Origin: Salpingoeca rosetta
Taxonomy: Eukaryota; Protista; Choanoflagellata
Assembly (NCBI GenBank): GCA_033442325.1
Contig: JAWQFM010000018.1
Location: 272,195 to 336,194, forward strand
Length of the DNA: 64,000 nt
Direction: 5' to 3'
Every line of letters begins with the position of its first letter. Position 1 is the stretch's first letter. The translations under genes and the position numbers were made by a program. Below the pieces are notes generated by a model that saw only the letters and a program-made list of their open reading frames with translations, had not been told where the DNA came from and ran no database searches. Of the stretch, positions 4,813 to 28,432 are shown piece after piece.

Positions 4813-6129
4813 ACGTACGCGTATGCGGGGGTGTTGTTTGTGGGCGCCTGGCGGGAGAAGAGGGCCGGTGTGAGGCGGCTGAAGGTGGTGGAATTGTCCG
4901 CTTTGGCAGCGGGCTTCTGCTCCAGGTCCTGTTTTGGGGGCGTGATCTCTTCGTCAACGACATCGACGAGCGAATACTCCTGCGGGTTGAACAGCGATTC
5001 CGTGATCTTGTACCTGACAAGTGGCGGTGTGGAATGTGGTGTGATGTGTGGCGTAAGGTGAGCACTTTGCATCCCCACGAGAGGGTGATAGAATCACAGG
5101 GAGATAGACACAGGGGAAGACAGGGGCACACACACGCACGCACACGCACACACGCACGCACACACGTGGGGACAGTAAAGCAAGTGTCCGCACCTCTCAA
5201 TGCCCCAGTTCTTGTTGTATCCTGAAGGGAATTCGTAGTGCGTTGTCGGTATGCTTGCAAGCACCCTTGGGTACACAGCAGTCACAGTGAGTGATGGCGT
5301 GGTGAGTCATGGGCGTGCTGGAGTGCGACTAGAAGCACGGTCGAGTGGCATCAATTGTGAGCGTGCACACATGGCGGCAGCCACGTCAATCAAGAGCGCA
5401 TGTGCGCGTGTGTGTGTGTGTGCTTACTGCTCGTTGTATGCCTGGTCGCTGACGCGGCACACGGACATTTGAAAGTCGCGGATGACCTCCTGTGGTGATG
5501 GGGAGGAAAGAGGCAGGGGAGAACGTTGGTGTTGGTGGGAGACAAGCACGCTGGAATGCAGCCACATGTACACAGACACAGACATAGACACACACACAGA
5601 CACAGGCACAGACAGACACACACAGACGCACTCGAGACAACGCATGTGCTGCAATAATTGAGAGCGCACCCGCTTCATGTATCGCATGTACGAGTCTGTG
5701 ACGTCCGGGAACGACGCCTTTTTCTTCCACCTGGGTAGCTCCTCCTCCTCCACCGCCGTCTAAATGCATGCAGGCAATCGCAGCAGCGATGGTGGCGGTG
5801 GCGGTGGTTAGTGTCGGGGATGGTGTTGTTGCAGTGTGGTGTGGGATGATGAGGGATCTACGTGATACAAGGACAACGTCACCAATACATTGTCTTCACC
5901 TACACATGCGCGCGCATGTACTGGCATGCAGACGTGTAAAATACACTCTCTTTCCTTCAAGTAGAGCGCATCAAGATGAACAAGATTAAGATCAACGTCG
6001 GCCCAGAGGGTGGTACCTTGTCGCCAATCATGGTGCTTGGCACGGGGTCGATGCCAAGGTCCTTGAAGAGCTTCTCAAACTGGTCTGTGATAAAGTTGCC
6101 GGCAAGCTTGCTGCGACGTACACCTGCAG

Positions 6130-6456: not shown

Positions 6457-7142
6457 CACGTGAACATGTGAGCACGAGCATATGTTTGCACGTGCACATG
6501 TGGAGGCAAATCATAGCAACAGACCTGCTGACGACGGGTGATTTGACCATGAAGAATGCGGGGACATTGAACTTCTCAAACACGATCTCCGTCATGCGTT
6601 GGCGGTCGGCTTTTGTGTTCCACTGCACGCAGCACGTGAGCACATACGCGGGTATGTACACACAGGGGCACACACGCAGACACATGCACACATGCAGACA
6701 CAATTACGCAGACACACAGCCACACAGACATGCACGCAGACAGATGCATGTGTGCGCCATGTAGAAACAGCCGTAAGTATGTGCAAAGGCAATCATCAGC
6801 GGCATGGACAACAGACACTCGCATGTGCGTCTGCAGTGAGCGGTCTGTGCTAGACATTCAGGGATAACAAGAGGCATCGGCACGCCGTACCGCGGGCTCG
6901 ACGAGCATGAGGGGGCGGTCTTTCGGGTCGCAGTTGAGGGAGGAGGTGTATGTGTGCTCCAGCAGCGTCTCAATCACATCCCAGTCGTCAACTGCCCCCG
7001 CCACCAAGAGCAAAGCAATAACCATGAGGGAAAGCACGTGTCAGTAACACATGTTTGTGCGCGAGCGACATCGTCGGCATATGTTCAAAGTTACACAAAA
7101 ACGTGGCGGTACACGCACATTTGCGCAAATGCAGAATGACAC

Positions 7143-25615: not shown

Positions 25616-27150
25616 ATGGAGGGTGATGCGACGCCCACGCCCAAGGCGAAGAAGCGAGTCTCGCTCGCGATGAAGCCCGAGATCATCCCCAACACAAAGA
25701 CACAGTCATCAACATCAACCGCAAAGAGAATATCGGGCTCAGCCGAAGCGCCAGCGAAGAAATCAAAGTCCACAGACTCAGCAACAGCAGACCCAACAGC
25801 AACGACGAGCAAAGCCAAGAAGGCAAAGGGAAAGCAGGCAAAGGGGAAGAAGAAGAACAAGGCCAAGAAGCCCACGGGTCCAAAGGACATCCCCCTGCAC
25901 GTGCCCGATGACACACCACAAGAATCCCTCTTCGCAAGCAAACGCAAGAAGCAGAAGAAAAAGGCCAAGAAAGAGAAGGAGGAGACGTTGGACCCGGCAG
26001 CGCTGGCATCGGATATCGACCCTGCCCAGCTGCAGGTCGATTACGTGGACAACCGGCGGGGTCCGCGCCCAGGCGAGATTGCCAACAAGCTGCGACGAAA
26101 GGAGCTCTACAAGTCACAAAAGCACCAGAAGGAGAAGGACAAGAAGGCACGGCGAAGGCAGCGCGATATGCTTGAGAAGCAGTATGGCGACGCTGTCCCC
26201 AAGCCCAAGCCCAAGACCATCGAGTCCATGCGTGTCAGTGACGGCACAGAAATCGCCGCAGATGACGAAGAGGTGTGTTTTCTGGCACATGTGTGTATGC
26301 GTGTATGCATGTGTGTGTCTGCTTATGCATGCGCGTGTTTATGCATGTATGTGTGGTTGTGAGAACCTGTTTGTGATGATGTCGTGTTGAGTGCTGCTTT
26401 GTCAGCTGTGTATGCCTGGTGCTGCACATCAGCTCATAGTTTCTCTTGCTCTCCGTCTCATCATTGATGAAGGTACTTGGAGATGAGAGGAGCGATGAGT
26501 TTGCTTCCTATTTCCTCGGCAAAACGTCCAAGGTCCTCGTCACCCTCTCCACCAACCGCCCCTTCCAAGTGAGCTTGGCAGCATCTTGCGTTGTGCGCGC
26601 TTGCGCTTGCTTGGATGCGTGCTGCACTGCTTTTTACCATTGGACCCGCCAACACCAAGCCAACGGCCCGCCCTCGTGTTTTCTCACTCATTATTGTGTG
26701 CCATGTGTGATGCCCAACTGCAGAGAACGCTTAAGTTTGTTGAGGAGTTGATTAACATCATCCCTTCCGCCACCTACAGAAAACGAAACGTATGTATCGC
26801 AAAGCAAGGCAACAAGCACACTGGTCTTGCACACACACCCTCCTTCCCTGCCCATGCATGCTGATTCTCCTCTCTTCTCTTCCCTCAACGCTGGAATGAC
26901 GACATATACTACTCAACTCACTCTGAGACCTCCATACCTGGAGCGGGGTTGTTTGGTTGGGCGTTTGTGGCTGCTATTTGCTTGGTGCCTCCTGCTCTGT
27001 TCCTCCACACGCAGCCGTGTTGGAGGGATGGCGTGGGTGGTGCCGAGTGGCGGCTGCACGCGCACAGCCTTCAACCCTTTGTGAATGCGGAAGAACATGG
27101 TTCCTCTCACTGACCAGCAGCTCTCTTTGCATGCCCTTTCCTTGTTTTCT

Positions 27151-27245
<95 letters not shown>

Positions 27246-28432
27246 CACACACGCACGATACTCCCTCGTTTTCGTTGATTGGCTTCGCTTGGAATGACGA
27301 CATATACTACTCAACTCACTCTGAGACCTCCATACCTGGAGCGGGGTTTGGTTTGGCGTTTGTGGCTGCTATTTGCTTGGTGCCTCCTGCTCTGTTCCTC
27401 CACACGCAGCCGTGTTGGAGGGATGGCGTGGGTGGTGCCGAGTGGCGGCTGCACGCGCACAGCCTTCAACCCTTTGTGAATGCGGAAGAACATGGTTCCT
27501 CTCACTGACCTCAGAAGCCACCACTCCCTCGTTTTCCTCTTTCGTTTCTTTCCTCATTCTGTGCTACGTTCTATTCTCCATCATGTATCGTCTTCTCCAC
27601 CGTGCATCAACTTCTCCTCCTTATCCACACCACCACCACCACCACCATCACCATCACCGCGCACGCGCGATCTGACAACCTGCTTGTCTTTCATGATCAA
27701 CGAGTCAACCCCACTAACCTCACCCCTCGTGTTCGTGCGTGTCGTGCCCAGGGTTTCCCGCTCAAGACCATTGTGGAGCAGGCCTCTGCGCGCGGGTACA
27801 CGGCGCTGATTGTTGTGAACCAGAACATGCGGCGCGCCGAGTCCCTGGTCATGAGCCACCTCCCGTCGGGGCCCACCGCGCACTTTAAACTCTCCAGCGT
27901 TGTTTGGCCAAAGGACATCCACGGCACCGCAAAGGACACGGGCCACTTCCCCGAGGTGCTCACCACCAACTTCAATACGCGCCTCGGCAAGCAGGTGTCG
28001 CGCATGTTCCAGTCGCTCTTCCCGCAGCACCCGGAGTTTACCGGCCGCAGCGTCGTCACCTTCCACTGCCAGCGCGACTTTATCTTCTTCCGCAGGCACC
28101 GCTACATCTTCCGCGACACCAAGCGCGTCGGCCTCCAGGAGATTGGCCCGCAATTCACGGTGTGTGTGTGTGTGTGTGTGTGTGCGTTTGTTTGATTGTG
28201 TGTGTGTGTCATTCATGCCAGGTTCTGCTCGTTCCGGTTGTTGGTGAAAAGCAATGTCCTCACTCACTCACTCGCCCTCGCTTGTTTGCCCGCCACCATC
28301 ATGGCCACGTTTTGCACCAAACAGCTGAAACTGCAGTCGTTACAGCGTGGCACATTTGACACCAAGTACGGCGACTACGAGTTTGTCGCCAAGGCAGACA
28401 TGTACGTGGACCGCAAGAAGATGTACCTGTGA
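25616..28432 (+). CDS. RPF1: Ribosome production factor 1 (Brix domain)
   Basis: PKPKTIESMR, DEFASYF, SHLPSGPTAHFKLS, PEVLTTNFNTRLG, VTFHCQRDFIFFRRHRYIF, LQEIGPQFT|LKLQSLQRGTFD. Confidence 0.93.
26890..27118 (+). ncRNA. Putative long box C/D snoRNA/scaRNA, copy 1 (RPF1 intron)
   Basis: Terminal stem GCTGG/CCAGC; C-like ATGACGA 26896; D' CTGA 26923; C'-like ATGCGGA 27085; D CTGA 27110. Sense strand of a ribosome-biogenesis host intron. Confidence 0.65.
27156..27242 (+). repeat. (CT)n microsatellite between the two C/D copies
   Basis: Direct observation. Confidence 0.95.
27290..27510 (+). ncRNA. Putative long box C/D snoRNA/scaRNA, copy 2
   Basis: Near-identical to copy 1 (small indel/substitution in the GU-rich part). 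Identity starts just before box C (27294) and ends just after box D (27505). Confidence 0.6.

Follow-up and report, generated by a model that had tools for sequence, protein, structure and literature searches.

A tandem pair of long candidate box C/D snoRNA genes, with two predicted large-subunit guides, in an RPF1 intron of Salpingoeca rosetta

An intron of the RPF1 gene in the choanoflagellate Salpingoeca rosetta very probably harbours two genuine box C/D snoRNA genes in tandem and, going by sequence and predicted fold, we lean towards the fuller proposal that these are sister genes for a single fibrillarin-type, intron-encoded RNA of about 222 nt that carries two methylation guides for LSU rRNA. 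We computed the anatomy, the copy number, the strand-specific fold and the complementarities together with their chance levels, and from these we infer expression, processing, methylation and a role for the rod-like insert. If the RNA is expressed as predicted, then choanoflagellates, the closest living relatives of animals, have a U29/snR71-type guide of roughly three times the usual length, and a ribose methylation is predicted inside the sarcin–ricin loop, the universally conserved site at which elongation-factor GTPases dock and are activated and the target of both ricin and alpha-sarcin. If true, methylation of this loop would be a natural probe of how much chemical change the loop can tolerate; if it is the guide for the U29 site alone that works, what we have is a sound but ordinary new annotation.

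The host intron and its two copies

Positions are those of the window, that is, the whole 64-kb stretch of S. rosetta DNA that was analysed, and the stranded features described below lie on its + strand. The original prediction named an RPF1 intron as host, and the exons on both sides agree. Exon 3 (26724-26789) is an open frame of 22 codons with AG at 26722-26723 and GT at 26790-26791; it is followed by the host intron (26790-27751; 962 nt, phase 0, GTATGT...CCCAG), placed by homologue mapping, and then by exon 4 (27752-28170, the 3' end approximate), which encodes the Brix domain (Pfam PF04427, E 2e-22). The host protein was searched one exon at a time, without a joined spliced model, and homologues align on either side of the intron separating exons 3 and 4; for one of them, P0007, the part up to residue 137 matches upstream of the intron, and residues 161-333 match from position 27749 on. 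The best relatives with a name are called 'ribosome production factor 1', the RPF1 homologues show 59-80% identity, and the relatives that turned up include one from Monosiga brevicollis (P0009) as well as a Logan fragment of 80% identity (P0001). Both snoRNA copies are oriented in the sense of their host, a ribosome-biogenesis gene; 100 nt separate them from the 5' splice site and 243 nt from the 3' one, distances that differ from the one favoured in vertebrates.

The direct copies, at 26892-27115 (224 nt) and 27290-27510 (221 nt), are 98% identical; the differences amount to one 3-nt indel and a single substitution near 26950, and the lower stem of the insert contains both. When 20-60 nt of their flanks are aligned, the scores are no better than those of shuffles, which upholds the earlier claim of near-identical tandem copies whose identity stops just outside the C and D boxes; such identity within, and shuffle-level similarity without, indicate either selection acting on precisely the mature RNA or its homogenisation. 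Between the copies, the spacer contains a (CT)43 microsatellite (27156-27241), and copy 2 is bracketed by a 14-nt direct repeat, ACTCCCTCGTTTTC, whose two occurrences in the window lie 16 nt before it (27260-27273) and 12 nt after it (27523-27536), in the manner of a target-site duplication. Many dispersed copies had been named in advance as grounds for giving up the snoRNA reading. Searches of the 55.4-Mb genome with the whole RNA and with the rod alone as queries return two copies, both in the RPF1 intron, and with no dispersed copies of either query a SINE, MITE or transposon is ruled out. Protein coding is likewise rejected, for with the copies spaced at 395-398 nt the sole ORF spanning both reads identical sequences in different frames.

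Box C/D anatomy and the long insert

Copy 1 with its terminal stem covers 26890-27118, of which 26892-27115 is the body common to both copies. The 5' stem GCTGG (26890-26894) pairs with the 3' stem CCAGC (27114-27118), and between them come a C box, ATGACGA (26896-26902), which aligns to the C box of the SNORD29 model and is a variant in having C at position 5 where U is canonical; a 20-nt D' guide (26903-26922); the D' box CTGA (26923-26926), also placed by the SNORD29 alignment; an insert of 156 nt (26927-27082); a degenerate C' region (27081-27091); the core of the D guide (27097-27109); and the D box CTGA (27110-27113). The C' box itself is a putative assignment, either GTGAATG (27081-27087), which keeps the UGA core, or ATGCGGA (27085-27091), which does not, and degenerate C' boxes are common in box C/D snoRNAs. 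As RNA, the C box AUGACGA agrees with RUGAUGA at six of seven positions and keeps its GA, the D' and D boxes are perfect CUGA, and the K-turn geometry is canonical: the stem has 5 bp, the bulge 3 nt (AAT), and a GA faces the GA of the D box. Copy 2 (27281-27519 with its external stem, body 27290-27510) has its C, D' and D boxes at 27294-27300, 27321-27324 and 27505-27508. Just 2 bp (GG/CC) adjoin these boxes, and the copy rebuilds a 2+6-bp closing stem from unrelated flanks, GGCTTC (27281-27286) pairing with GAAGCC (27514-27519). Both copies, then, possess the terminal C/D motif and stem of box C/D snoRNAs. The layout described earlier (C, 20 nt, D', a long insert, C' and D) holds up with the insert at 156 nt, and its further spacing of 18 nt requires that ATGCGGA be the C' box.

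Within the insert the predicted fold comprises a small 5-bp hairpin (CTCCA/TGGAG, loop TACC; 26930-26943) and a 56-bp hairpin, the rod (26945-27078), built of 40 Watson–Crick and 16 G.U pairs around an apical loop CAGC and interrupted only by 1x1 mismatches and bulges of at most 4 nt. The fold z-score is -6.7 for the insert and -6.0 for the whole RNA. The rod depends strongly on the strand: its free energy is -91.6 kcal/mol (z -6.7) when the + strand is folded and -53.4 (z -1.4) for the - strand and, with 16 G.U pairs versus no A.C mismatches, it is stable on the sense strand only. The G.U pairs are scattered, the longest wobble run being 2, and the apex is Watson–Crick. Among the hairpin arms that had been proposed, CTCCA/TGGAG, CCTCCA/TGGAGG and GGGTTG/CAACCC all occur in the fold, but GCAGCCG/CGGCTGC is unpaired in the minimum-energy structure, where GCAGCCG is the apex, and the idea of four separate hairpins gives way to what is essentially one continuous 56-bp rod plus the small hairpin. 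The rod has no large pseudouridylation pocket and is followed by neither ACA nor AGA, and a box H/ACA or mixed C/D–H/ACA RNA is rejected.

When both strands of the 64-kb window were swept in the manner of snoscan, this RNA was the only candidate to combine a terminal stem with two anchored guides for rRNA. The original view, of box C/D RNAs that lie in tandem in an intron and contain a long structured insert, is upheld. We envisage that the spliced-out RPF1 intron would be trimmed by exonucleases up to the snoRNP assembled on the terminal C/D K-turn, leaving the mature RNA. The small hairpin and the rod would together stand in for the usual short loop between D' and C', and the most likely job of the rod would be to clamp D' against the degenerate C' box.

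Two guides and their predicted ribosomal targets

The D' guide, through bases 26911-26921, pairs over 11 bp (1 G.U) with LSU GUGAGUUGGGU. The duplex begins at position 2 and puts the A of GUGAG at D'+5 (in this genome the LSU context is GUGAGUUGGGU). Shuffled guides reach this pairing strength in 42 of 1000 cases (p about 0.04). The guide is in register with the SNORD29 consensus guide and has A where that consensus has G; in the S. rosetta LSU a U lies opposite this A. The LSU adenosine concerned is tabulated as AtU29 Am2936, human U29 Am4493 and yeast snR71 Am2943 (PMC3511168), and it is from the sequence context together with this source that we equate the D'+5 site with the U29 site. We think that the D' guide probably does serve that site, in which case it would direct 2'-O-methylation of the adenosine of U29/SNORD29 (human 28S Am4493), snR71 and AtU29. 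Rfam at its gathering thresholds finds nothing in the whole window, and in a permissive scan the sole snoRNA hint is SNORD29 itself, at 13.5-15.2 bits versus a gathering score of 48, in the same register; the miRNA and lncRNA matches of that scan are meaningless. By score the RNA falls outside SNORD29/snR71 (Rfam CL00051), and yet it has a guide for the conserved adenosine. The claim that there is no known family to point to is thus overtaken as regards the 5' module (C, guide, D'), which, with its target adenosine and D'+5 register in common, looks to be the functional equivalent of U29/SNORD29/snR71. No other SNORD29-type candidate turned up in the genome, where the best match is a SNORD27-like snoRNA of 76 nt.

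In the D guide, bases 27097-27108 form 12 bp (1 G.U) with the LSU sarcin–ricin loop, GAGAGGAACCGU, starting at position 2 and with the position adjoining the D box mismatched, and 5 of 1000 shuffles match this strength (p about 0.005). With 11 and 12 bp, the two guides are both within the 10-21 nt of complementarity upstream of D or D', with the target at position 5, that is used to recognise such guides, and their target sites are 93 nt apart in the 3' part of LSU rRNA. Under the D+5 rule the methylated residue would be the last A of the GAGA tetraloop, which we take to be the equivalent of E. coli A2662. Alpha-sarcin cleaves right beside this A, the phosphate of which contributes to the activation of translational GTPases. 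We know of no methylation-guide modification in the sarcin–ricin loop, and the literature that we searched yielded no report, in any organism, of ribose methylation in the GAGA tetraloop, so the prediction is either new or to be taken cautiously. On the sequence evidence we would put the prospects evenly on the D guide directing methylation in this loop. That the last A of the tetraloop is truly 2'-O-methylated and that choanoflagellates have a class of long box C/D RNAs in which the 56-bp rod is a working module is, as a joint proposition, a good deal more tentative.

The LSU sequences contain masked N runs of 100 nt (rDNA locus L003) and 583 nt (L005), which hide different parts of the LSU, so that across the two loci it was scanned in full. 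Genome-wide, we found no better targets: full-length complements of the guides at 0-1 mismatches are the guides themselves, and those with 2-3 mismatches are about as frequent as in a control with the pattern reversed. A 17-nt complementarity between the C' region and SSU rRNA involves one rDNA variant only, in a polymorphic expansion segment, and is set aside as probable chance. A metagenome scan with the 17-mer of D guide and D box gave 46 matches, about the chance expectation, none of which had a C box, further similarity or a snoRNA-like context. Against snRNAs, the best anchored pairing of the guides to this genome's U1, U2, U4 and U6 is 4-6 bp (U5 was not found in the genome).

How, then, might the locus be read differently? 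Among the points that count against our proposal are the variant C box AUGACGA, the degenerate C', the far sub-threshold Rfam score, the p value of about 0.04 for the D' match taken alone, the mere 2 bp beside the boxes of copy 2 and the distances to the splice sites, which are unlike the one favoured in vertebrates. A serious though clearly less probable reading accepts a real box C/D snoRNA in which the D' guide alone methylates, the sarcin–ricin match being fortuitous or a chaperone-type contact. The silence of the searched literature on tetraloop methylation fits this reading, as does the mismatch beside the D box, and there is a precedent in Tetrahymena, where the 3' end of the snoRNA TtnuCD32, box D included, has an even longer complementarity (15/16 nt) to the base of the sarcin–ricin stem, and the predicted site is unmethylated (PMC6315972). 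What this account has to accommodate is that the D guide is served by a canonical terminal C/D motif and is equalled by only 5 in 1000 shuffled guides, and that it forms a 12-bp duplex from position 2. Such a start and such a length are normal among active guides. Our proposal, with two working guides, has also to be set beside a reading that takes up the original hint of a scaRNA or chaperone-type RNA and sees a long orphan whose main job (localisation, protein binding or pre-rRNA folding) would depend on the rod, with methylation secondary or absent. The order C, guide, D', long apical hairpin, C', guide, D is indeed that of vertebrate intronic C/D scaRNAs (PMC4041459), the rod is under strand-specific constraint, and elsewhere in the genome there is another box C/D RNA, of 237 nt and unrelated, that has a 156-nt internal insert and lacks a credible guide for rRNA. 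We nevertheless consider this reading unlikely, and the original hint does not hold up: no guide fits U1, U2, U4 or U6, both fit rRNA, one of them at a deeply conserved site, there is no CAB-like loop, and a wobble run of at most 2 means that the rod is without the G.U/U.G stem that defines the vertebrate RNAs, leaving neither guides for these four snRNAs nor a consecutive-wobble Cajal-body helix.

It might be argued that there is no RNA function here at all, only a recent local duplication or foldback insertion in which C/D-like motifs arose by chance; the near identity of the copies, from a duplication maybe too young to show selection, and the 14-nt repeat around copy 2 would suit this. Two anchored guides, a K-turn, independently formed stems and a 16:0 ratio of G.U to A.C are jointly very unlikely by chance, however, and the sequence is not a repeat family, so we give the argument very little weight. 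Least probable of all, to the point of being nearly discounted, is the rod as a precursor of small regulatory RNAs, of the sno-miRNA or hairpin-RNA type. A long near-perfect hairpin invites the thought, and there are weak Rfam matches to miRNA precursors (E 2-8), but these lie 60-150 bits below the gathering scores, and a six-frame, exon-wise search of the genome, which is not proof of absence, gave no match to Piwi (PF02171) or RNase III (PF00636) domains. An independent report, in which neither Dicer nor Drosha was found in S. rosetta (PMC3563456), agrees with this search, and a Dicer substrate or miRNA precursor is not plausible.

Relation to known box C/D RNAs

The closest known counterparts are U29/SNORD29 (Rfam RF00070), snR71 (RF00479) and AtU29, of clan CL00051, which likewise run C, guide, D', with the core CUCACU directly before D', and which have the target adenosine in LSU domain V and the +5 register in common with the RPF1-intron RNA; they are intron-encoded too, and their site is conserved across plant, human and yeast (PMC3511168). 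Compared with SNORD29, the S. rosetta RNA is far longer, at 224 nt against a model of 65 positions in Rfam, it adds the 156-nt structured insert between D' and C' as well as a variant C box, and it has an unrelated second guide, for the sarcin–ricin loop. In this last respect the comparison is with Tetrahymena TtnuCD32, a U14-like box C/D RNA that acts in 5.8S processing (PMC6315972) and whose 3'-terminal complementarity is also to LSU helix 95. [quoted passage not shown] The likeness to vertebrate intronic C/D scaRNAs consists in being intronic and having a long, G.U-rich hairpin between D' and C', but in those RNAs the Cajal-body element is a terminal helix of consecutive G.U/U.G pairs from GU/UG repeats (PMC4041459), and the RPF1-intron RNA is without such an alternating helix and has predicted targets in rRNA rather than snRNA.

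A further comparison lies within S. rosetta, where an intron of a gene for a Sec63-domain helicase holds three copies of a second long box C/D RNA, about 237 nt in length (G000:C2, about 381.2-382.7 kb). It too is tandem within one intron, has identity bounded by C and D, and carries a 156-nt insert in a matching layout, yet it has no sequence similarity to the RPF1-intron RNA (local alignment is at shuffle level), its guides reach 8-9 bp at most on rRNA, and its insert, at -59.6 kcal/mol, is far less stable and shows no strand specificity. This genome contains no fewer than two unrelated families with a 156-nt insert at the equivalent place, which raises the question of the purpose that a rod-like insert would serve between D' and C'. 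In vertebrates a hairpin in this position is a Cajal-body address. Because S. rosetta is amenable to genetic manipulation, the meaning of the rod is testable in a unicellular relative of animals.

Tandem copies in the host intron

Two direct copies of a long box C/D RNA lie on the plus strand within a 962-nt, phase-0 intron (26790-27751, GTATGT...CAG, read from the sequence), and the ORF piece 3' of them encodes a Brix domain (PF04427, E 2e-22) whose top-ranking named relatives are 'ribosome production factor 1' (RPF1) of animals, fungi and Monosiga brevicollis. The host protein was searched per exon, by reference, rather than as a joined, spliced model, and RPF1 relatives map by tblastn to exons either side of the intron. 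Sequence reading, repeat search and alignment place copy 1 at 26892-27115 (224 nt) and copy 2 at 27290-27510 (221 nt), with a (CT)43 microsatellite (27156-27241) making up most of the spacer. In pairwise alignment the two are 98% identical, the sole differences being one substitution and one 3-nt indel near 26950. When flanks of 20-60 nt are aligned globally, they score no higher than shuffled sequence, so that similarity does end at the limits of the element, as the original prediction held; its reading, that box C/D RNAs with a long insert stand in tandem in an intron, was also right in kind. Searches of the 55.4-Mb assembly with the whole RNA, and again with the hairpin rod of its insert, each returned exactly these two places, which rules out a repeat family.

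Copy 1 begins with the 5' stem GCTGG (26890-26894), next to which come a 3-nt AAT bulge and the C box ATGACGA (26896-26902), and continues through a 20-nt D'-associated guide, the D' box CTGA (26923-26926), the 156-nt insert, a degenerate C' region (27081-27091), the D guide, the D box CTGA (27110-27113) and the 3' stem CCAGC (27114-27118). The terminal arrangement of copy 1 is that of the canonical C/D K-turn: a stem, a bulge of 3 nt and, in tandem, GA facing GA. Copy 2, with flanks unlike those of copy 1, is closed by GG/CC and an external helix, GGCUUC/GAAGCC; that each of two dissimilar flanks supplies a closing helix argues for function. As for the origin of copy 2, the copy and its private flanks of 16 and 12 nt are bracketed by a 14-nt exact direct repeat, ACTCCCTCGTTTTC, found only twice in the window (27260-27273 and 27523-27536). 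The pair resembles a target-site duplication and is perhaps a trace of how copy 2 arose, although this is suggestive only, and copy 2 carries no A-rich or poly(A) tail.

The rod and a second long box C/D RNA

The insert folds into a 5-bp hairpin and a single 56-bp rod of 40 Watson-Crick and 16 G.U pairs, with CAGC as its apical loop and irregularities limited to 1x1 mismatches and small bulges. Folding energy is -91.6 kcal/mol on the sense (+) strand (z -6.7 vs dinucleotide shuffles), as against -53.4 kcal/mol (z -1.4) on the antisense (-) strand. Neutral decay of a palindrome should leave about equal numbers of G.U and A.C at the non-Watson-Crick 'transition' positions, and with the 16:0 ratio seen here (16 of 16 G.U) the structure looks to be maintained as RNA, on the host-gene strand. 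What differs between the copies lies in the lower stem, and both retain the rod. The rod probably clamps D' against the weak C' box, and it may bind a protein or serve as an address. A role as small-RNA precursor is unlikely, since neither a Piwi nor an RNase III domain is detectable across the whole genome, in line with PMC3563456. The long insert had also prompted the suggestion of a scaRNA or chaperone. Vertebrate intronic C/D scaRNAs do have a long apical hairpin at the position that the rod occupies here, but they are defined by a G.U/U.G wobble stem, which the rod lacks (PMC4041459), and neither guide pairs beyond 4-6 bp with U1, U2, U4 or U6; that suggestion is therefore not upheld. For U5, RF00020 found no genome match, in a search that had no positive control and so proves nothing.

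A second long box C/D RNA lies on contig 2, where an intron of a Sec63-domain helicase gene contains three tandem copies of it with a period of ~480 nt (locus L063:2720-4160, G000:C2 ~381219-382659). Its 237 nt run GTGATGA, 25 nt, CTGA, a 156-nt insert, a C'-like box and CTGA, and thus share layout and insert length with the RPF1 RNA, yet the two have no sequence similarity, and the fold of the second is weaker and not strand-specific. Its rRNA complementarity is at chance level only, with no credible rRNA guide. Long rod-bearing box C/D RNAs therefore recur in this genome, with rods that need not be homologous. Further upstream within the same gene region, three 63-nt repeats lie 176-202 nt apart, each ending CTGAGG (L061:9121-9561, G000:C2 ~377620-378060), and may be another small snoRNA cluster.

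The D' guide and the rDNA

This genome's rDNA was located first, and its rRNA sense strands were then scanned for guide complementarity. The D' guide (26911-26921) pairs over 11 bp (one G.U), from position 2 off D', with LSU GUGAGUUGGGU, which puts position 5 opposite the A of GUGA*G. This target shares its sequence context with the site that PMC3511168 tabulates under AtU29 Am2936, human U29 Am4493 and yeast snR71 Am2943. The pairing length is attained by 42 of 1000 shuffled guides. SNORD29 is the sole Rfam snoRNA hint here, with C box, guide and D' aligning in register, though its 13.5-15.2 bits fall well short of the gathering score, 48. Where its consensus guide has G, the D' guide has A, and the paired LSU base is U in both intact copies, a change consistent, on the sequences, with guide and target having altered together; going by the SNORD29 model consensus, the base there is presumably C in most eukaryotes. 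No other SNORD29-type candidate was found in the genome, the best match being a 76-nt SNORD27-like RNA. We think that the RPF1-intron RNA is most likely the U29/snR71 functional equivalent of Salpingoeca rosetta; the family, originally not recognised and still well below the Rfam threshold, is recognisable by function from its D' guide target. The 76-nt RNA itself (L009:502-577, minus strand; G000:C5:950114-950190) is a canonical box C/D snoRNA with a GACAAGCAUAU guide, which scores 36.3 bits for SNORD27 (gathering score 52, E 4.5e-4) and looks like a short snoRNA of the ordinary kind, so that such RNAs do occur in this genome.

The rDNA is scattered across many contigs, several times within 25 kb of a contig's start, and masked N runs in or beside the loci (L003, reverse strand, 5211-5310 and 6694-6793; L005, 2609-3191; L007, 832-975) do not hide the same part in one LSU copy as in the other. 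Unit L004 (G000:C30:791402-798103), with an LSU match of only ~3.7 kb vs 4.46 kb in other units, is probably a truncated or degenerate copy: neither of its strands contains the sarcin-ricin loop sequence or GGGTTTAGACC, the stretch of domain V that comes after the target of the D' guide. SSU copies differ within an expansion segment (L007:3260-3276 vs ~3256 of L006, reverse strand), and the rDNA is thus heterogeneous. The contig 25 SSU variant offers a 17-nt complement (2 G.U pairs) to the snoRNA C' region, which other copies do not, and this is probably chance.

The D guide and the sarcin-ricin loop

The D guide (27097-27108) pairs over 12 bp (one G.U), from position 2, with GAGAGGAACCGU in the sarcin-ricin loop, 93 nt downstream of the D' guide's LSU site, a length attained by 5 of 1000 shuffled guides. 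Position 5 falls on the final A of the GAGA tetraloop, which we take to be the equivalent of E. coli A2662, presumably 1 nt 3' of the alpha-sarcin cut and 2 nt 3' of the ricin adenine. Neither guide has a longer complement elsewhere in the genome, a single metagenome scan gave chance-level matches only, and copy 1 is the only C...D pair on either strand of the window to pass a snoscan-like sweep (4 bp or more in the terminal stem, and two anchored guides that each pair over 10 bp or more). The RPF1-intron element is, on this sequence evidence, most likely a dual-guide, intron-encoded box C/D snoRNA, tandemly duplicated. A tandem arrangement as such is unremarkable; what is unusual is the length, the rod and the sarcin-ricin guide, and the interest lies in the predicted methylation of the sarcin-ricin loop and in the recurrent rod architecture.

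For the GAGA tetraloop we found no report of ribose methylation in the searchable literature; the closest human site that it mentions is G4618, on the stem of helix 95. In Tetrahymena, TtnuCD32 pairs at the base of the sarcin-ricin stem, and its predicted site is unmethylated (PMC6315972), so the methylation predicted here may be new, or else the contact may be non-methylating. The two contacts do differ in place: that of TtnuCD32 is at the stem base, whereas the D guide of the RPF1-intron RNA would contact the sarcin-ricin loop, including the GAGA tetraloop.
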